From the sequence record LC727701.1: a stretch of 64,000 bases of DNA; one strand, 5' to 3'. The notes under the pieces were generated by a model. It saw nothing but the letters and a program-made list of their open reading frames with translations, ran no database searches and was not told where the DNA came from. The position numbers and the translations under genes were made by a program. Shown here piece after piece: positions 635 through 7,631 of this stretch (the first letter of the stretch is position 1; every line of letters begins with the position of its first letter).

Positions 635-721
635 TGGCTGGTAAGGTAGGATTCGAACCTACGGTGGGCTTTCGCCAACGGATTAACAGTCCGCTCCCTG
701 CTGCCACTCGGGTACTTACCA
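635..721 (-). tRNA. tRNA-Asn(GTT), atypical long variable arm (class II, Tyr-like body)
   Basis: rc TGGTAAG..CCCGAGTGGCAGCAGGG A GCGGA-CT-GTT-AA-TCCGT TGGCGAAAGCCCACC GTAGG-TTCGAAT-CCTAC CTTACCA G CCA. Confidence 0.85.
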
Positions 722-730
722 ATGAAATCG

Positions 731-768
731 TAACAGTCACTTGCTCTACCGACTGAGCTATCACGGAA
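731..768 (-). repeat. Exact 38-bp copy of the 5' half of tRNA-Asn (2857-2894)
   Basis: taacagtcacttgctctaccgactgagctatcacggaa is identical at both positions. Confidence 0.95.
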
Positions 769-928
769 GAATTATGGCGATTTTATATTAGAGATGAGTT
801 ACTGACAACCTAATATAGATATGTAATAACTACATATTATTACAATCTGAGTATTATTTATTTCTTGTTATGACATTATGTAAATAACGTGTAGTTAATC
901 TTATTAGAAACTATCAAAGTTACTAATT

Positions 929-1441
929 CTAACTAAAACGAACCACCATTACCTCTGTACCAAAAGTATCTGCAACCCACTGGTTAAATTCTTTATCAGT
1001 GATACCGCGTAGGTTCAGATTAAATGAGGCATTGTCAACAAGAATATATTTTACAGACGATATTAATTCTTCTTTAATATCTTTTTGAATAGATGATTCC
1101 TCAGGTTGATGAATATATTTACGGAGTTGGTGTGTAATTAAACAAGAAACAATATTATCTTTAGCATTCTGGAACTTAGCCAGTACAGCCTGTTTAATTT
1201 TATCTTCTACAAATACAGCTAGACATTCGCCAGGATGACGATTAGCAAACTCAATCAATGCAGTTGTACTACCACATTGCCGACCTACAAATAATCCAAC
1301 AGTCCTGTATTCACGAATAACAATATGACCAATAGAATTAGATCGATAATTAACCCAGTTCTCATTCGTTTTTTGAATTAAAGCATCTAGGATATCTTGG
1401 TACTTTACAATAGTTCTTACAAACTGATTAGAGTTAGTCAT
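929..1441 (-). CDS. Hypothetical protein, degenerate P-loop (GRQCGST) and Walker B-like YILVD
   Basis: 170-aa ORF; motifs by inspection. Confidence 0.7.
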   Translation of the reverse strand: MTNSNQFVRTIVKYQDILDALIQKTNENWVNYRSNSIGHIVIREYRTVGLFVGRQCGSTTALIEFANRHPGECLAVFVEDKIKQAVLAKFQNAKDNIVSCLITHQLRKYIHQPEESSIQKDIKEELISSVKYILVDNASFNLNLRGITDKEFNQWVADTFGTEVMVVRFS

Positions 1442-1725
1442 AATAGACTCCTTTATTACAATGTAGCATAGATTCAGTTTTTTAACTGGAATTAAATGCC
1501 GATTTTGAAAAGGTGATAAAACCTTTTCTCATCTATAAATGAATTTATAATAGTAACAATGAATATAACCAGGGGTGGCAAACCCCTGGCATTTAGACAC
1601 ACTCTATAATAAGTTCTACCACCGAGTGTGTTTAGTGGATAGATTTAAGAATACTTTATTATAGTACTCTTACATAATATCATCGTGCCAGTATAATTAT
1701 CTAAATAGTTATAAATATTATTATT

Positions 1726-2733
1726 TTAATCAATGATTAATGGTGCTAGTTTTACCTGATAGATACCTGATAACAATTGGCTTTTCAACATATATGCTCC
1801 ACCACCAACTGGCATTTTAGATCCACCTACAATGATCATGCTATTATCCGGACCTTTAGCTATAGATGAAATATTAAGGAATCCGATACCTAGTTCAAAT
1901 GGTTCAGCCCATTTCCGGCGCCTAATATTAAAACGTTGTGCAAACATTTTAGTTACACCGCCGACATCAACAGCGTTAAGGTAATTAAAATAGTCCCCAT
2001 CTACATAACCATTACCTTGCCAGATTGTTCCTTTATCAGCAGGTATAATCATCCAAGGTGTTTGCTCCCATATTAAGGTAGTTGCATTATATCGATAAAC
2101 TTCAAGATTAGGTATGTTCTTTGTATTATCCCAACCACCAAAATGGTAAAAGTAACCATTATAAAAGAATAACTGTTGACCTGAACGAGCACCACCTGAA
2201 TAGTCTTGCCCGCTAAGCCAAGACTTACTTGATGGTTTTAATCGCATTGCGTTTACGCCAATTGGGTTAACGCATAGAATAAGATCATTACCATCTGATG
2301 CGGAGGCTGTGCCCCAAAGTGGTACGGGACCACTATATCGCTCAACCCTATTGCCTGTAGCTATATCAAAATGTTGTATAAAGTTAGATGTTCCCGTACC
2401 ACCATTACCAGCCGAGTTCCATCCAGTAATACCGCCATAAACAATAAAGTTATTCTTATGTAATGTCCCAAATCCTAAAGATACCCCTGGTAAGAATGTT
2501 CCAGAAGCAGTTGCACCTATATCGGCAAATGGCGATATGGTAAAACGTCTGAACACAGTTGCAGCTGTTTGTCCTTCAGTATGATGACCAGATCCAACAT
2601 ACAGTGTATTTCCATCCACATATGACATTGTACCAGCTAACGCTACAGGTAGATCACCTAATTTAATAATTTCATTAAATCCAACCAAGGGTAACTCTTC
2701 GCCTATATCTGGTGATAATAGTAATTCAAACAT
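1726..2733 (-). CDS. Kelch-repeat beta-propeller protein
   Basis: Repeated hhhhGG motifs (IVYGG, YHFGGWD, IIVGG) with downstream Y/W. Confidence 0.7.
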   Translation of the reverse strand: MFELLLSPDIGEELPLVGFNEIIKLGDLPVALAGTMSYVDGNTLYVGSGHHTEGQTAATVFRRFTISPFADIGATASGTFLPGVSLGFGTLHKNNFIVYGGITGWNSAGNGGTGTSNFIQHFDIATGNRVERYSGPVPLWGTASASDGNDLILCVNPIGVNAMRLKPSSKSWLSGQDYSGGARSGQQLFFYNGYFYHFGGWDNTKNIPNLEVYRYNATTLIWEQTPWMIIPADKGTIWQGNGYVDGDYFNYLNAVDVGGVTKMFAQRFNIRRRKWAEPFELGIGFLNISSIAKGPDNSMIIVGGSKMPVGGGAYMLKSQLLSGIYQVKLAPLIID

Positions 2734-2787
2734 GAGTGTGCTCTCAAGTAAATCATTTTAATTCATAAGATAACCCATGGCAACATA

Positions 2788-2811
2788 AAAGAGTAGCCGA
2801 AGCTACTCTTT
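2788..2811 (-). terminator. Intrinsic terminator after tRNA-Asn
   Basis: 10-bp stem, TTCG loop on minus strand, T tract. Confidence 0.75.
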
Positions 2812-2817
2812 AGAATA

Positions 2818-2893
<76 letters not shown>

Positions 2894-2899
2894 ATTAAA

Positions 2900-2976
2900 T
2901 GGCGCGCCCAAGGGGACTCGAACCCCTGACCACCCGCGTGACAGGCGGGTATTCTAACCAACTGAACTATGAGCGC
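2900..2976 (-). tRNA. tRNA-Asp(GTC)
   Basis: 77-nt cloverleaf, CCCGC-CT-GTC-AC-GCGGG, encoded CCA. Confidence 0.95.
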
Positions 2977-3028
2977 AAACGTATGGACATGACTTCCTAC
3001 ATAGTATTACATAACCAGTAATATTTTA

Positions 3029-3376
3029 TTACGGGCGATCAGTCCAGTGCTTGAAATAGTTACCATCCTTGGGACGATCGTACTTAGCAAGAATATTTTT
3101 AAGTTCTTCGCCGGACAACTTAATACTATCGCCTACTGGGCTATCCAGTTCAGGGCAAGGTTCAGTTTTACGTGTAATGATTAAATTATCAGTCCCATCT
3201 TTGAAGATAAAGATAAACTGCGTTTCATTAGCACTAATCTTTTTCTTAACGCAATGCTTTACTTCTGGATGTTTCTTGTGGATCGCTACAAAAGATTCAA
3301 CAAGAGTTAGCTTTATAAACTCAGGGCTAATAAATGTGAAATATACAGCGCTCTGCGTTGGGGTTAGATGATCCAT
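3029..3376 (-). CDS. Hypothetical protein in tRNA cluster
   Basis: 115-aa ORF, GGAG RBS, co-oriented with cluster. Confidence 0.65.
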   Translation of the reverse strand: MDHLTPTQSAVYFTFISPEFIKLTLVESFVAIHKKHPEVKHCVKKKISANETQFIFIFKDGTDNLIITRKTEPCPELDSPVGDSIKLSGEELKNILAKYDRPKDGNYFKHWTDRP

Positions 3377-3378
3377 AT

Positions 3379-3684
3379 TTACTCCGTATGTTTGAGATAG
3401 GCTTTAACTGCTTTAAGACCTTTATTAAAGAACATAGCTTCAACATAAGTAATGTTACTTACATCCTCGCCGATAAGTTCCCATTTGATGCAACGTGTAA
3501 CAGCGTTGATTGTAATATCTAATCCGTTTGGGAATAGGGTTACTTCATCGGTCAGGTGAATCCAATCGGGAGCCTTCGCTCCATTACGTAAACGGGGACT
3601 AAAAGTAAGATTATAAAGTGTTTGTAATGGTTGTCTCAATAGTTCTTTTTGTTCTTGATGTTCCATGTATTTTCCTAGAGACAT
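3379..3684 (-). CDS. Hypothetical protein in tRNA cluster
   Basis: 101-aa ORF packed between neighbours. Confidence 0.6.
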   Translation of the reverse strand: MSLGKYMEHQEQKELLRQPLQTLYNLTFSPRLRNGAKAPDWIHLTDEVTLFPNGLDITINAVTRCIKWELIGEDVSNITYVEAMFFNKGLKAVKAYLKHTE

Positions 3685-3896
3685 TTAAAAATATAAATAG
3701 AATGGTTATCTCTTTCGGTTATCTTTAGAGTATTCTCATTTCGAATAACTTCAAGAGACTTGTATTTATGTTCCAGAATATCCAGATGAGAAATACACTG
3801 TTCCCTATTTTCAAATAGGATATTACTTTCATTAGTCGAAATGAAACCAAATAATCCAACTTTGATAGATAATACCAACATTATTACTGTATTCAT
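3675..3896 (-). CDS. Small protein with hydrophobic N-terminus
   Basis: ATG 3896 after GAGG RBS; MNTVIMLVLSIKVGLFGF. Confidence 0.55.
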   Translation of the reverse strand: MNTVIMLVLSIKVGLFGFISTNESNILFENREQCISHLDILEHKYKSLEVIRNENTLKITERDNHSIYIFKCL

Positions 3897-3921
3897 GTTT
3901 TCCTCAATGAGACAGTATAAA

Positions 3922-3942
3922 ACCTCCCTCAAGTGGGAGGCT
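3922..3942 (-). terminator. CCTCCC/GGGAGG hairpin after tRNA
   Basis: Stem-loop followed by T tract on minus strand. Confidence 0.55.
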
Positions 3943-3948
3943 AGTATA

Positions 3949-4025
3949 TGGTGGGCCCAGCAGGACTTGAACCTGCGACCAAGCGATTATGAGTCGCCTG
4001 CTCTAACCAACTGAGCTATAGGCCC
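3949..4025 (-). tRNA. tRNA(CAT), most likely tRNA-Ile2 (lysidine, reads AUA) rather than Met
   Basis: GAGCAGGCGACTCATAATCGCTTGGTCGC matches the enterobacterial ileX-type body as recalled. Confidence 0.85.
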
Positions 4026-4032
4026 TTTTTAT

Positions 4033-4326
4033 TTATTCTGGTAAGAATGTTCCATCTTTTTGACGGACTAATACACCTGACCATTTGAATGTATTTGTAT
4101 CACTAGCAGGGCACTCTCTAATTACATTGGTTCTAAATGTGCCATGTGGATAGGTTACAGTGAATGTAATATGATTATTACAAACATGCAATACAGAAGA
4201 CTTTGCTTCTGTTAGATAGTGTAAGCCTTGAGCTAATTGAATATTAGTTAATTCAGGGTCACTAAGAATAGCGTAAAGAGCTGTTCCTATAATTTGATGT
4301 TCCCATGATATCCATTTATTATCCAT
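4033..4326 (-). CDS. Hypothetical protein in tRNA cluster
   Basis: 97-aa ORF with AGGA RBS. Confidence 0.6.
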   Translation of the reverse strand: MDNKWISWEHQIIGTALYAILSDPELTNIQLAQGLHYLTEAKSSVLHVCNNHITFTVTYPHGTFRTNVIRECPASDTNTFKWSGVLVRQKDGTFLPE

Positions 4327-4347
4327 CCTATTTACCTATTATTAAAA

Positions 4348-4423
4348 TGGTCGGAGTGGGGAGACTCGAACTCCCGACATCCTGCTCCCAAAGCAGGTGC
4401 GCTACCAACTGCGCTACACTCCG
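4348..4423 (-). tRNA. tRNA-Pro(TGG)
   Basis: CCTGC-TT-TGG-GA-GCAGG, encoded CCA. Confidence 0.95.
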
Positions 4424-4432
4424 TATTTAAAT

Positions 4433-4517
4433 TGGTGCCCGAAGTCGGATTCGAACCGACAAGACCGTAGCCGGAAGATTTTAAGTCTTCTGTGTTTACC
4501 AATTTCACCATTCGGGC
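4433..4517 (-). tRNA. tRNA-Leu(TAA)
   Basis: 85 nt, GAAGA-CT-TAA-AA-TCTTC, long variable arm, encoded CCA. Confidence 0.95.
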
Positions 4518-4575
4518 ATTGTGCTTCAATACATAACATGTAATACTAGGTATTTTATTACAACTTATTTTAAAT

Positions 4576-5028
4576 TCAACGTGGCCATTGTAAAGAAGTT
4601 ATCTTATTACCATTAATGTAGACATCGGTCACTTCGCACCAATCATTAATTCTGTGCTCAATAATTGGCACATCATTTCGGCCAGCCACTCCAATCATAT
4701 TCCATTTAACATAAATATTCATTAGATCAATTGTTAATTTCTCTTTTATGAGTTTAGGAGAAATTAATTTAATATTATTAATGTTAAAGAAGTAATTATT
4801 AACTTCTTCTAAATATTCATTAGTATTAGTAGTACTAACTTTACCTTCATGTTCAAGTGAAGATGGTTTATTTTGATTTACAATATTATTCACTAGACTT
4901 CTTAAAACGGCGCTTGCCCTACCAGCTTCACGTCTTTTATATTTATCATAGTCTTTTACATTAGCTGCAATTTTATCAAATTCTTTTTGGGCATAGATTA
5001 ACCCTGGTAAAAGTTCATTCTTAATCAT
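4576..5028 (-). CDS. Hypothetical protein
   Basis: 150-aa ORF, GAG RBS. Confidence 0.6.
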   Translation of the reverse strand: MIKNELLPGLIYAQKEFDKIAANVKDYDKYKRREAGRASAVLRSLVNNIVNQNKPSSLEHEGKVSTTNTNEYLEEVNNYFFNINNIKLISPKLIKEKLTIDLMNIYVKWNMIGVAGRNDVPIIEHRINDWCEVTDVYINGNKITSLQWPR

Positions 5029-5084
5029 TTTATAATTACTCTATGTTATTTGTACATATTTTAACATACTCACGTAAAAACAAA

Positions 5085-5239
5085 ATATAAAGCCTCCCCG
5101 AAGGGAGGCGATATATCGTCATTAATGCCCAGCAAAGAGTTTTACTCTCTGGGAGCCAGTTGGAAGGGGGACTGGCTCCGATTTATTATGACTAATGTAG
5201 AAACGAGGGGGAGGGATCATTTCTACATATCATTACATA
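5085..5239 (-). ncRNA. Candidate sRNA with two C-rich-loop hairpins ending in a UUCG terminator
   Basis: Stems 5194-5202/5220-5228 and 5151-5159/5170-5178, terminator 5092-5109, TATG at 5239-5236; no ORF. Confidence 0.5.
5092..5109 (-). terminator. Intrinsic terminator
   Basis: GCCTCCC-TTCG-GGGAGGC then T-rich tract on minus strand. Confidence 0.85.
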
Positions 5240-5248
5240 CTCAGTAAG

Positions 5249-7132
5249 TTATTCTTCAATACCAATGACCGTATTGCGTTCATTGGTGTTCTCTACGGTT
5301 GAACCACTTGGGAAGCTACTGACAGATGCTTGCATTAGTTTCAACATGTCGATAGCAAATACTCGATATGTAGATTCAACCTTAGCGTCGTCGTACGATG
5401 CATGAATGTTAAGAATGGCATTATCGGCCCTTTTAGCCAGCAGATATACATCCTCAAGAGCATCTTTATCTTTAATAGTGGATAGCTTATGTTTGTAGAT
5501 ATCCCCATTGACAGATAGGTCAGGATACTGGGCTACCCAAGTGTCCGCAATAGTCTTAGTGTTGTTAGACAGAACGTCAATGATAACGTTAGCTGCTTCC
5601 ACAATACCGGTAGCATCAAGCAACTTAATCTTAGCACCAGCATTATCTGGCCATTTGGGTTCTTGGAAGTTTGTCTTTACATTGGGTTTCCATTCAGCCA
5701 GAAGAGTAGCGACTTTCTTAGGGTCTTGCCAATCATTCCCTTTGAACAGATTAACCACGGGGGCTAGTATCTTACTGTTCTCATCCAGAACTTTCTGGTT
5801 GTGACGATCAGCTTTAGCTACAGCATTAGTGATATTGGCTTTTGCGGTCTTAGGATCATTAGACGCGAACGTCTCGTAACTCGATACTTTTACTTCGCCG
5901 GTTTTAAGCTTTGCTTCTGCCACCCATTTGGCATCACCATAGGTACTTTTCAGTGTAGCAATAGCTTTCTTCTTTTTATCAAGATTGATCTCAGGGCCAG
6001 AGTCGAAGATACTCTTAATGGTGTCGATAAGACCTTCATTTGAGACTTGTATAAAACCGGGAGTATTAATGATGGACTTCTCTACATACCCGCCACGAAT
6101 AACTCGATTTATAAAACCATTAAGACCACTACCAGTTTCGGCCATATCTTTCATGATTTCTATATTTGTTTCACCAGCACTCTGGGCATTGTATAAATAA
6201 TAAGAACCATCTTTAAATTTTAGTATAATCCAGTCATCTCCAGTTAGATATGAATCAATATTACTATCATTCATACTTTGGTATTTAATGAATTCTGGAT
6301 TAGTACTTAGTACTTCTTCAATAAACTCTTCTAATGCCGCAGAATTATTAATAGCATCAACAGGTGGAATTTCACCATCAATGGGTTCAGTAGTTGGACC
6401 AGTAACAATGGCAGGTAACGGATCCTCCTCTACAATAACAGTTTCTTCCACTGGTAGAGCACCACATGAAGCATCAATTAGTTTATTAAAACTACTAATG
6501 ATCTCACCAAGTGCTACAAGAACTGCTGGCTGTTCAACTTGTTCAACTTTAGCAATACCAGTTTCTGTAAATTCTTCAGTGATTCGGTTATAAACTTCTA
6601 CTAGTTGGTTAGTAAGTTCTGCTACTTTTGGCAGAGTCTGCTTAGACAGAGGTTCAACTACAGTTGTATCTGCTTCAACAAAAATAGAATCATCTTCTTC
6701 TAAACGGCTAGTATTAGCTGAGCCAGCTGTGAAGTTATAAGGCATATCTTGAATTACTTCATTAATTTCAGATGCCTCCATATCTTCATTTAGACGACCA
6801 CTATAAGTACGCATCATACCTTCTGCTTCTTTAATAGTGGAATGCGCTAAGCGTCCCCAATCACCACGCATAATACCGCGCTCGGTAAGACCGCGTGCAG
6901 CTGAACCAAGATCAATAGGTTCTTCAATAAATGATTGTTCTTCAACCCACTCTTCATTACTGTAACATTCTTTTAGAATGGTTTTAAATTTAGTACTAAA
7001 GGGTTGTAGAATCTTTTTATCTACTTGTTCAACATTTGTTTTAAAGTGTTCTAGACTTGGTGTAGCTTTTGAAGATACTTTTTCAGTACCGCTATATAGC
7101 GTACGGTTTAGGAAGTTTAGCATTTTATTCAT
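5249..7132 (-). CDS. Virion head/ejection protein (phiKZ gp303-like)
   Basis: 627 aa; S-x-E|G prohead-protease-type site (VSNE|GLID); position next to nrdB. Confidence 0.65.
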   Translation of the reverse strand: MNKMLNFLNRTLYSGTEKVSSKATPSLEHFKTNVEQVDKKILQPFSTKFKTILKECYSNEEWVEEQSFIEEPIDLGSAARGLTERGIMRGDWGRLAHSTIKEAEGMMRTYSGRLNEDMEASEINEVIQDMPYNFTAGSANTSRLEEDDSIFVEADTTVVEPLSKQTLPKVAELTNQLVEVYNRITEEFTETGIAKVEQVEQPAVLVALGEIISSFNKLIDASCGALPVEETVIVEEDPLPAIVTGPTTEPIDGEIPPVDAINNSAALEEFIEEVLSTNPEFIKYQSMNDSNIDSYLTGDDWIILKFKDGSYYLYNAQSAGETNIEIMKDMAETGSGLNGFINRVIRGGYVEKSIINTPGFIQVSNEGLIDTIKSIFDSGPEINLDKKKKAIATLKSTYGDAKWVAEAKLKTGEVKVSSYETFASNDPKTAKANITNAVAKADRHNQKVLDENSKILAPVVNLFKGNDWQDPKKVATLLAEWKPNVKTNFQEPKWPDNAGAKIKLLDATGIVEAANVIIDVLSNNTKTIADTWVAQYPDLSVNGDIYKHKLSTIKDKDALEDVYLLAKRADNAILNIHASYDDAKVESTYRVFAIDMLKLMQASVSSFPSGSTVENTNERNTVIGIEE

Positions 7133-7187: not shown

Positions 7188-7209
7188 ACCCTCCCAATTA
7201 AGGGAGGGT
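7188..7209 (-). terminator. Terminator hairpin
   Basis: ACCCTCCC-N6-GGGAGGGT. Confidence 0.7.
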
Positions 7210-7217
7210 CATTATGT

Positions 7218-7631
7218 CTACATTATATCTCGTGTACCATCATTCATTTCAACAACAGTGACTTTATCACCAACCTTTGGTTTTTCATTGGTAACTGTTT
7301 GAACCATGTACTGCTTGCCATCTGTATTAACAATCAGTTTACATTGAAATGTTTCAGTAGCACTAACATTATTACCGACTGCGCCGCCTGCGGCACCACC
7401 GATTAAACCACCTACCCAACCTCCAGATTTACCAAAGATTGCTCGACCTAACACAGCGCCTGCGGTGGCTCCAACCGCACCTCCAACAGTAGTGCCGACA
7501 ACACTACTATCTTTAGCAACTAGCTGACATTCTGAATGTGCAATAATACCATCTGTAGTTGATTTTACTTCAGTTGCTGCAAATAGGACAGTGGACCACA
7601 TTAAAACTACGAATGCGATAATCTTAATCAT
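7218..7631 (-). CDS. Glycine-zipper 2TM exported protein (YcfJ/SlyB-like)
   Basis: Signal peptide then GGAVGATAGAVLG..GGLIGGAAGGAVG. Confidence 0.75.
   Translation of the reverse strand: MIKIIAFVVLMWSTVLFAATEVKSTTDGIIAHSECQLVAKDSSVVGTTVGGAVGATAGAVLGRAIFGKSGGWVGGLIGGAAGGAVGNNVSATETFQCKLIVNTDGKQYMVQTVTNEKPKVGDKVTVVEMNDGTRDIM

Follow-up and report, generated by a model that had tools for sequence, protein, structure and literature searches.

The small RNA locus

The window analyzed here, a stretch of 64,000 nucleotides (nt) from sequence record LC727701.1, carries on its minus strand the gene of a small RNA of approximately 142 nt, located between the homologues of the phiKZ genes PHIKZ303 and PHIKZ302 and upstream of a tRNA cluster; according to the phiKZ annotation and alignment, all of these lie on the minus strand. 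The 1.1 kb surrounding the small RNA matches Pseudomonas phages NK1, OMKO1, PA02, and others at 100% identity, and phiKZ at approximately 95% over part of its length; the window belongs to a phiKZ-like Pseudomonas phage. The small RNA is almost certainly the orthologue of a transcript that has already been described and is not a new discovery. Using ONT-cappable-seq, Putzeys et al. (2024, microLife, PMC10914365, Fig. 6B) reported phiKZ TU237, with terminator T131, as an abundant and northern-confirmed primary transcript of 141 nt, which was placed among the "5'UTR-derived ncRNA candidates" (UTR, untranslated region; ncRNA, non-coding RNA) with no function assigned. The present analysis adds the exact ends of the RNA in the window, a structure backed by covariation, and the recognition of the loops as the conserved part in Phikzvirus, Pawinskivirus, and phiPA3; moreover, it reveals a restriction to phages of Pseudomonas aeruginosa and excludes a coding function and a plus-strand RsmA sponge. 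The genes at the locus are listed below, with the evidence for each (ORF, open reading frame; cDNA, complementary DNA; aa, amino acids).

5085..5226, minus strand: small RNA gene (~142 nt), orthologue of the 141-nt phiKZ TU237/T131 ncRNA candidate; cDNA depth and ends, fold z-score of -6.39, published northern blot
5249..7132, minus strand: PHIKZ303 homologue, 627 aa, head structural protein, upstream gene; ORF list and phiKZ annotation
4576..5028, minus strand: PHIKZ302 homologue, 150 aa, downstream gene, followed by the tRNA-Leu/Pro/Met/Asp/Asn cluster; ORF list, phiKZ annotation, and tRNA calls

Transcript ends and abundance

Public RNA runs were compared with window positions 4850-5400. 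The nanopore cDNA runs X10 and X13 represent phiKZ infections, and both show the phiKZ-type letters at 5183 and 5205; the data are assembler contigs from phiKZ rather than from the phage of the window, and contig depth measures abundance only roughly. With this restriction, cDNA depth across 5078-5229 was 100-600 times the flanking depth. Word depth across 5097-5210 amounted to 84,000-139,000 in X10 and 1,300-2,600 in X13, compared with 160-630 and 15.5, respectively, downstream, and zero upstream of 5229. Plus-strand T runs abut 5085/5084 and correspond to poly(A) joined to the RNA 3' end, and an adapter ending in GGG abuts 5226 and marks the RNA 5' end. Because the adapter lies at 5226 and the poly(A) at 5085/5084, the RNA extends from 5226 to 5085 on the minus strand and measures 142-143 nt, which agrees with the length of 141 nt reported earlier. 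The initial annotation of this sequence had proposed a discrete species of about 150 nt, which is borne out by the cDNA ends and by the published northern blot (PMC10914365), and had favored the minus strand, with which the poly(A), the adapter, and the terminator tail all agree. The locus thus specifies a discrete, separately initiated, and intrinsically terminated minus-strand RNA of approximately 142 nt. The raw-read RIP-seq run X24 contained no reads from the small RNA locus.

An ORF had initially been reported as absent. Strictly, a mechanical ORF of 32 aa does exist (5220..5122, minus strand) and is the only one within the small RNA, but its ATG start codon is ATA in phiKZ, T2P, and 124.01; because this sole ORF is not conserved, the region is considered to be non-coding.

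Secondary structure

The RNA from 5226 to 5085 folds at -54.7 kcal/mol, compared with -30.7±3.8 kcal/mol in 200 dinucleotide shuffles (z-score of -6.39), and none of the 200 shuffles folded as well; the plus strand of the same stretch reaches a z-score of only -3.16. The predicted elements are the following (MFE, minimum free energy).

5226-5217 paired with 5206-5197, minus strand: hairpin P1 with loop L1, UCCCUCCCCC (5216-5207, 10 nt); MFE and centroid structures
5118..5192, minus strand: junction-closing helix P2, GUCAU (5192-5188) paired with AUGAC (5122-5118), enclosing P3 and P4; MFE, weaker support
5179-5171 (GGAGCCAGT) paired with 5160-5152 (ACTGGCTCC), minus strand: hairpin P3, a perfect stem of 9 base pairs with loop L3, CCCCCUUCCA (5170-5161, 10 nt)
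5133..5151, minus strand: third hairpin P4 with loop AAA; fold, one covarying pair
5076..5116, minus strand: intrinsic terminator, consisting of an AUAUA extension, GCCUCCC-UUCG-GGGAGGC (5109-5092), and a U-rich tail (5091-5076); terminator scan and RNA 3' ends

All sequence features named in the initial annotation are present on the minus strand at the positions given there. Among its two perfect stems of 9 base pairs, P3 and its loop stand as described, and the third hairpin (5151-5133) and the UUCG terminator are confirmed by the sequence and the terminator scan. The first stem was drawn too short: the inverted repeat of 9 base pairs, ATGTAGAAA / TTTCTACAT, is present, but hairpin 1 lengthens to 10 pairs, GUAGAAAUGA / UCGUUUCUAC, of which the added pairs covary (G-C in the window versus A-U in phiKZ). 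Because of this extension the loop is the 10-nt UCCCUCCCCC rather than one of 17 nt, and because the 5' end lies at 5226, the "AU" of the originally drawn stem falls outside the RNA. L1 and L3 each have an unpaired probability of 1.0 in the window's RNA. As modeled, the robust architecture consists of the 5' hairpin P1/L1, a junction with P3 (carrying L3) and P4, and the terminator. Helix P2 was given no weight because its pairing is not the same in Phikzvirus, Pawinskivirus, and phiPA3; the Pawinskivirus junction is closed by a longer helix, which shows compensatory changes. The mapped 3' end reads GGGAGGC-UUUAUAU(U), with three consecutive U residues before the first interruption, and the long uninterrupted 3' U tail of Hfq-dependent small RNAs (sRNAs) of the enterobacterial type is not found.

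Conservation and covariation

Ten distinct homologues were compared: five from Phikzvirus (142 nt), four from Pawinskivirus (PA1C, HPP-Temi, PS119XW, and phiLBG22; 178-180 nt), and the one of phiPA3 (Miltoncavirus; 157 nt, covariance-model score of 76.5 bits, E-value of 1e-15). All ten begin at a TATG directly past the stop codon of the PHIKZ303 homologue. RNAalifold analysis of a MAFFT alignment of the nine Phikzvirus and Pawinskivirus sequences yielded 43 pairs, of which 8 show compensatory changes. In a model-based alignment of all ten sequences, 98.6% of the 430 helix cells are standard pairs, and 14 pairs are changed on both sides, versus 6.1±1.6 in column shuffles (0 of 500) and 0-3 when the partners are shifted by 1-3 columns; having been fitted to the model, this alignment favors the structure, and the MAFFT result agrees with it. 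In P1, six of the nine modeled pairs are changed on both sides (G-C versus A-U in Phikzvirus; U-A, U-G, and C-G in Pawinskivirus). P3 is paired in 100% of its cells and has two pairs with compensatory changes (U-A/U-G/C-G, and G-C to A-U or C-G), and the covarying pair of P4 alternates between A-U, G-C, and U-A.

The loops are conserved as well. The 8-nt core of L3, CCCUUCCA, is invariant in all ten sequences and three genera. L1 reads UCCCUCCCCC in the window, UCCUUCCCCC in phiKZ, UCACUCCU in Pawinskivirus, and CCUACUCCU in phiPA3, with a CUCC motif that is kept across Phikzvirus, Pawinskivirus, and phiPA3 (CUUCC in phiKZ), and Pawinskivirus has a third C-rich stretch, CCCCUCCUUUCA, past the junction. 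The linkers between the helices cannot be aligned across genera. Stems that vary with compensation around conserved loop cores are the opposite of what had initially been named as evidence against a regulatory RNA, and the comparison indicates that fold and loop cores are preserved in three genera of nucleus-forming jumbo phages of P. aeruginosa. The Pawinskivirus RNA has about 36 additional nt (PA1C locus L002, 2409-2520, and others) and contains a direct repeat, CUCC(C/U)UGUUGUG, after P4 and before the terminator. The two copies offer alternative partners for the junction 5' strand CACAGC, and the repeat could represent either what is left of a duplication or a structural switch.

Approximately 40 helix cells (about 9%) are G.U pairs, which become C.A mismatches on the other strand; because of this, selection must act on the minus-strand RNA. 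The same observation bears on the earlier suggestion that the plus strand might act as an RsmA/CsrA sponge with GGA/AGGGA loops. The plus strand does fold (z-score of -3.16) and its loops would hold GGA, but the polarity of the RNA is minus (poly(A) at the 5085 side, 5' adapter at 5226), the minus strand carries both terminator tail and promoter, and the G.U pairs would be lost as C.A mismatches, so that this reading is contradicted and has become hardly conceivable. A sponge of the RsmY/RsmZ type on the transcribed strand was likewise rejected, as the loops of the minus strand are C/U-rich and without GGA, which occurs inside stems only; a search of a related phage genome with RF00195 gave no match.

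Within Phikzvirus the RNA is 93.7-100% identical, whereas identity in the gene ends on either side is down to 38.6% and 72.6%. The window and phiKZ share 97.2% identity over the 142-nt RNA; homology to phiKZ proper ends at about 5240, and identity to phiKZ drops to just 38.6% in the 3' part of the PHIKZ303 homologue, which places the small RNA at a recombination breakpoint. In phage T2P it is the 5' part of PHIKZ302 that diverges (72.6% identity), and the small RNA is at least 97% identical in both phiKZ and T2P. By this sequence comparison, the small RNA is a conservation island flanked by mosaic breakpoints.

Searching the complete records of 201phi2-1 and Phabio with the covariance model revealed no homologue (best score 33.8 bits, driven by the terminator). 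A pattern scan of IMG/VR returned the phiPA3 and PA7 records alone, and 20 of 20 pattern matches in metagenomes were negative with the covariance model. In the data examined, the small RNA is confined to jumbo phages of P. aeruginosa. At the corresponding place, after the PHIKZ303 homologue, 201phi2-1 (locus L027, 4770-4880) and Phabio (locus L026, 4680-4750) have a TATG with a U-tailed hairpin about 60-90 nt or less behind it, without similarity to the small RNA. A small transcription unit may thus be conserved in position even where its sequence has been replaced.

This positional conservation is relevant for the view that the RNA is a functionless by-product, in which a promoter-terminator pair would insulate PHIKZ303 from the tRNA region and the hairpins would merely slow decay. 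The unrelated TATG-plus-hairpin units of 201phi2-1 and Phabio suggest that position may outweigh sequence, and PHIKZ303 and many of its neighbors have been reported dispensable in transposon sequencing (Tn-seq) of phiKZ. We nevertheless consider this view very improbable, given that three helices are kept by covariation, that the 8-nt loop core is invariant over three genera in which the flanks cannot be aligned, and that the RNA forms a conservation island between recombination breakpoints.

Promoter

The following promoter-like elements were found on either side of the RNA.

5226..5229, minus strand: TATG promoter core, with G 5226 as the transcription start; mapped 5' end, kept in 10 of 10 homologues
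5236..5239, minus strand: upstream TATG named initially; sequence comparison, kept in Pawinskivirus and phiPA3, TATC in phiKZ
5243..5251, minus strand: TAACTTACT, resembling the phiKZ middle-promoter element AAanTTACc; centered at about -21 from G 5226, overlapping the stop codon of the PHIKZ303 homologue (gp303)
5068-5065 and 5058-5055, minus strand: two more TATG motifs past the terminator; possible own promoter of the PHIKZ302 homologue

Promoters of the phiKZ non-virion RNA polymerase (nvRNAP) require TATG, of which the final G is position +1 (Yakunina et al. 2015, PMC4666361), and the middle-promoter element AAanTTACc is centered at about -24 (PMC4666361). The small RNA conforms to this pattern, with a TATG at 5229-5226 and the mapped 5' end at 5226. 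The TATG in use lies 10 nt downstream of the one at 5239-5236, which the initial annotation had taken for a late promoter; that motif is present, but the start in phiKZ is at the second TATG. A tandem TATGTAATG(A/T)TATG is conserved in Pawinskivirus and phiPA3, and its first copy is TATC in phiKZ; the RNA runs, which come from phiKZ without the first TATG, bear on the second TATG only. Further upstream, Pawinskivirus and phiPA3 retain AA(C/G)TTAC; in phiKZ, AAAACTACC lies at about -25. Because of this AAnTTAC-like element, the assignment to the late class appears uncertain.

Genomic neighborhood and read-through

Downstream of the small RNA, positions 635-4517 of the window contain six tRNA genes on the minus strand (Asn twice, Asp, Met, Pro, and Leu) with small ORFs between them. 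The synteny with a downstream tRNA-Leu is kept in all three genera. The next gene downstream varies by genus: it is PHIKZ302, tRNA-Leu directly, or gp374 (phiPA3); Pawinskivirus has no PHIKZ302 homologue at this position, and its tRNA-Leu begins about 40 nt past the RNA terminator. According to a recent report, a phiKZ orf302::Tn mutant adsorbs normally and does not grow on P. aeruginosa Env201, and its authors term gp302 a defense inhibitor (PMC12676376; bioRxiv 2025.11.23.690004); the Env201 defect might also reflect a polar effect on the downstream tRNAs. Because orf302::Tn fails on Env201 and gp302 has been named a defense inhibitor, the neighborhood of the small RNA can be regarded as an accessory or anti-defense region.

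On the upstream side, the homologue of PHIKZ304, a glycine-zipper 2TM protein (window 7218-7631), occurs in two forms of about 56% identity among otherwise near-identical Phikzvirus genomes. OMKO1 carries the other form despite its 100% match to the window at the small RNA, a further sign of local mosaicism. Between the PHIKZ304 and PHIKZ303 homologues, at 7188-7209, lies a GC-rich hairpin, ACCCTCCC-AATTAA-GGGAGGGT, with a terminator-like score on both strands.

Read-through from the small RNA into PHIKZ302 amounted to approximately 0.2-1% by depth in the pooled libraries, and one read-through contig was present in X13 (depth 15.5). In X10, depth was zero at 5059-5077 and returned at 5040-5058. 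The depth gap in X10 and the two TATG motifs after the terminator suggest a separate PHIKZ302 promoter, and the pair at 5068-5065 and 5058-5055 is consistent with a separate start for the PHIKZ302 homologue. These observations are pertinent to the possibility that the locus is a cis-acting 5' leader or attenuator, of which the short RNA would be the prematurely terminated form; regulated read-through would then control PHIKZ302 and the tRNA cluster, and the loops would sense a modulating factor. Such a leader would agree with the published classification as 5'UTR-derived, "controlled by conditional termination", and with the full-length form that is also seen on the northern blot (Putzeys et al. 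2024, PMC10914365). The read-through contig in X13, the synteny with tRNA-Leu, and the host-specific defect of orf302::Tn can be added in its favor, as can the complementarity of L1 (CCUCCCC) to the terminator 3' strand GGGGAGG. The low level of read-through argues against it, however, as do the signs of a separate PHIKZ302 promoter and the conservation of the RNA in genera that differ in the next downstream gene. Moreover, no conserved antiterminator pairing was found for the terminator 5' strand, and the Rfam scan of 4500-5800 gave no match to riboswitch or leader families. On balance, we regard a cis-acting role as unlikely.

Terminator cassette and related sequences

The terminator cassette at 5085-5125 of the window, ATATCGCCTCCC-TTCG-GGGAGGCTTTAT, and its close variants occur at no fewer than 15 places in the genome of the related phage PA7 (G001; 3913, 109320, 72016, 229183, and at least 11 more). 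Many copies end in TTTATG, so that a TATG core directly follows the terminator, and these include the small RNA terminator of Pawinskivirus and phiPA3. A search for paralogues in the phage genome showed hairpins 1-3 to be unique and the terminator cassette alone to recur; the genome-wide frequency of hairpins with C-rich loops was not above that in shuffled sequence.

The terminator after the PHIKZ075 helicase gene (G001, 236770-236810; locus L047, 16770-16810) shares 14 bases, AAATGATCCCTCCC, with the 5' half and loop of hairpin 1, a similarity that hints that the C-rich loop may descend from a terminator-type sequence. A perfect 14-nt complement to nt 5-18 of the RNA, located beside an ATG at 236792 of the same genome, was rejected as a target; it is the untranscribed strand of this very terminator and reflects same-sense similarity.

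Loops and potential targets

The two loops of the small RNA, L1 and L3, present two exposed C-rich motifs, as do sRNAs that pair with Shine-Dalgarno (SD) sequences. Potential targets were searched in three assembled genomes, PA7, PA1C, and phiPA3, in which genes were called crudely, by calculation of loop-target duplex energies; the anti-SD sequence of 16S rRNA, entered from general knowledge, served as control. For predicted phage genes, both loops favored windows at -20 to +3 relative to windows internal to coding sequences, by -2.8 kcal/mol for L1 and -2.0 kcal/mol for L3, nearly as strongly as the control with -3.1 kcal/mol. In terms of sequence, the loops are thus anti-SD-like toward phage initiation regions and, as described above, fully unpaired, in line with the initial annotation.

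On this basis we tentatively propose that the small RNA is a trans-acting regulator that occludes ribosome-binding sites (RBSs), a possibility to which we give some weight but no more than that. The gene is a stand-alone minus-strand unit, in which nvRNAP starts at the TATG G at 5226 and the strong UUCG hairpin terminator ends about 99% of the transcripts at 5085/5084. Its product is a very abundant non-coding RNA of about 142 nt, in which the 5' hairpin and a three-way junction expose the 10-nt C-rich loops UCCCUCCCCC and CCCCCUUCCA, both fully unpaired. These anti-SD-like loops would base-pair in trans with G-rich sequences of the GGAGG or GGAAGG type. The likeliest targets would be the RBSs of host and/or phage mRNAs, with lowered translation or stability as a consequence, and the action would probably be Hfq-independent, as for other sRNAs with C-rich loops. 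A more specific version appears doubtful, namely that a nucleus-forming jumbo phage makes an abundant anti-SD mimic which masks strong RBSs or G- or GGA-rich host RNAs (RsmA-binding sites, RsmY/Z) and reprograms mid-to-late translation without Hfq.

Several observations weigh against RBS occlusion. Complementarity to SD sequences is to be expected of any C-rich sequence, and with the loops of the window a duplex energy of -8 kcal/mol or better is attained at only 5-8% of the phage initiation regions. The matrix of loops by genomes was flat over the three genomes, without a signal of co-evolution between loops and SD sequences across genera, and the ranking combined over orthologues in these genomes had no outlier, so that no specific conserved phage target emerged and SD complementarity was generic. 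The best conserved candidate is a gene of about 760 aa with AAAGGAGGGC upstream of its start, at a z-score of only -1 to -1.9. Complementarity of the loops extends to the G-rich 3' strands of terminators in the phage itself, and many of the top matches in PA7 were such 3' (descending) strands of upstream terminators rather than SD sequences; C-richness could in part stem from shared ancestry with terminator sequences. Moreover, L1 and L3 do not share one identical motif, unlike the loops of cuckoo RNAs or RsaE, and L1 varies in length and sequence between genera. Finally, phiKZ transcription takes place inside the phage nucleus, apart from translation, and the small RNA might not get to the ribosomes.

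The strict conservation of L3 may alternatively reflect binding of a protein. By analogy with RsmY/Z, whose GGA loops titrate RsmA, the C-rich loops, which recall the CCUCC at the 16S rRNA 3' end, might act as a decoy or sponge for a host or phage RNA-binding protein, such as a factor at the 16S 3' end, S1, or a defense nuclease. A decoy would fit the very high abundance of the RNA, the two to three similar unpaired motifs per molecule on stable stems, and the restriction to phages of one host species; it would also explain why L3 is conserved more strictly than pairing with diverse SD sequences needs, and the RNA adjoins a candidate anti-defense gene. We know of no C-rich-loop-binding protein in Pseudomonas, which counts against this explanation, and the RNA is not listed in the Grad-seq study, nor was there a candidate protein partner; a decoy function therefore seems improbable.

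Hardly any work has addressed regulatory RNAs in strictly lytic phages, and phages of the phiKZ type are candidates for therapy as well as the model of the phage nucleus. The structure of the small RNA and the conservation of its loops over three genera are not described in the papers searched, and what was a "candidate" in a catalogue has now become a testable hypothesis. If RBS occlusion proves true, a phage that separates transcription from translation would still tune ribosome access by RNA, and among strictly lytic jumbo phages the small RNA would be the first trans-acting riboregulator of defined mechanism. Should the anti-SD reading prove false, a specific partner would still be suggested by the strictness with which CCCUUCCA is conserved.

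Comparison with known systems

The closest known RNA is phiKZ TU237/T131, which occupies the same locus between PHIKZ303 and PHIKZ302 (Crick strand), is 97% identical, and has the same ends and a length within 1-2 nt. The window differs from it at 4 nt, including two that make up a compensatory G-C/A-U pair in P1, and retains the upstream tandem TATG that phiKZ lost via the recombination breakpoint at about 5240. The paper describing TU237/T131 gives no structure, cross-genus conservation, or function (PMC10914365). Other RNAs arising by premature termination in jumbo phages are the 71-nt RNA upstream of PHIKZ221 in phiKZ and sRNA005 upstream of the gp182/gp277 tail gene in 201phi2-1 (PMC10914365, PMC11512511). 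These share with the small RNA a phage promoter followed by an efficient terminator, yielding an abundant short RNA and rare read-through, but differ in locus and sequence. Phage T4 makes the stable RNAs species 1 and 2 (RNA C and D), which are small, non-coding, and without assigned function, lie in the tRNA cluster, and are processed from a tRNA precursor. The window's RNA is likewise a small stable phage RNA beside tRNA genes, but it is located upstream of the cluster and is made from its own start to its own terminator.

Outside phages, an Rfam scan of 4500-5800 at E-values up to 10 gave nothing near the gathering thresholds; over the hairpins, alpha-r14 (RF02344) scored 19.9 bits (E-value of 0.36, gathering threshold 58.8) and SNORD20 scored 17.4 bits (gathering threshold 43), and there was no match to the RsaE, RNAIII, or 6C families. 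The alphaproteobacterial cuckoo/alpha-r14 RNAs (CcsR1-4, NfeR1; RF02344) resemble the small RNA in having several stable stem-loops and C-rich anti-SD loop motifs followed by an intrinsic terminator. In contrast to these, the loop motif of the window differs from CCUCCUCCC, the RNA is carried by a phage that infects a gammaproteobacterium, and there is no sequence homology, so that the resemblance would be convergent at most. Staphylococcus aureus RNAIII, RsaE, and the actinobacterial 6C RNA also have unpaired C-rich loops, which in their case pair with the G-rich SD regions of multiple mRNAs, and UCCC, present in RsaE and RNAIII, is also part of L1 in the window. 6C pairs with SD regions without a chaperone (PMC6486639). 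These RNAs differ from the small RNA in fold and organism, and their targets are known experimentally. By this comparison, the small RNA is not a member of the cuckoo, 6C, RsaE, or RNAIII families, and what it would share with them is a possible way of acting rather than descent.

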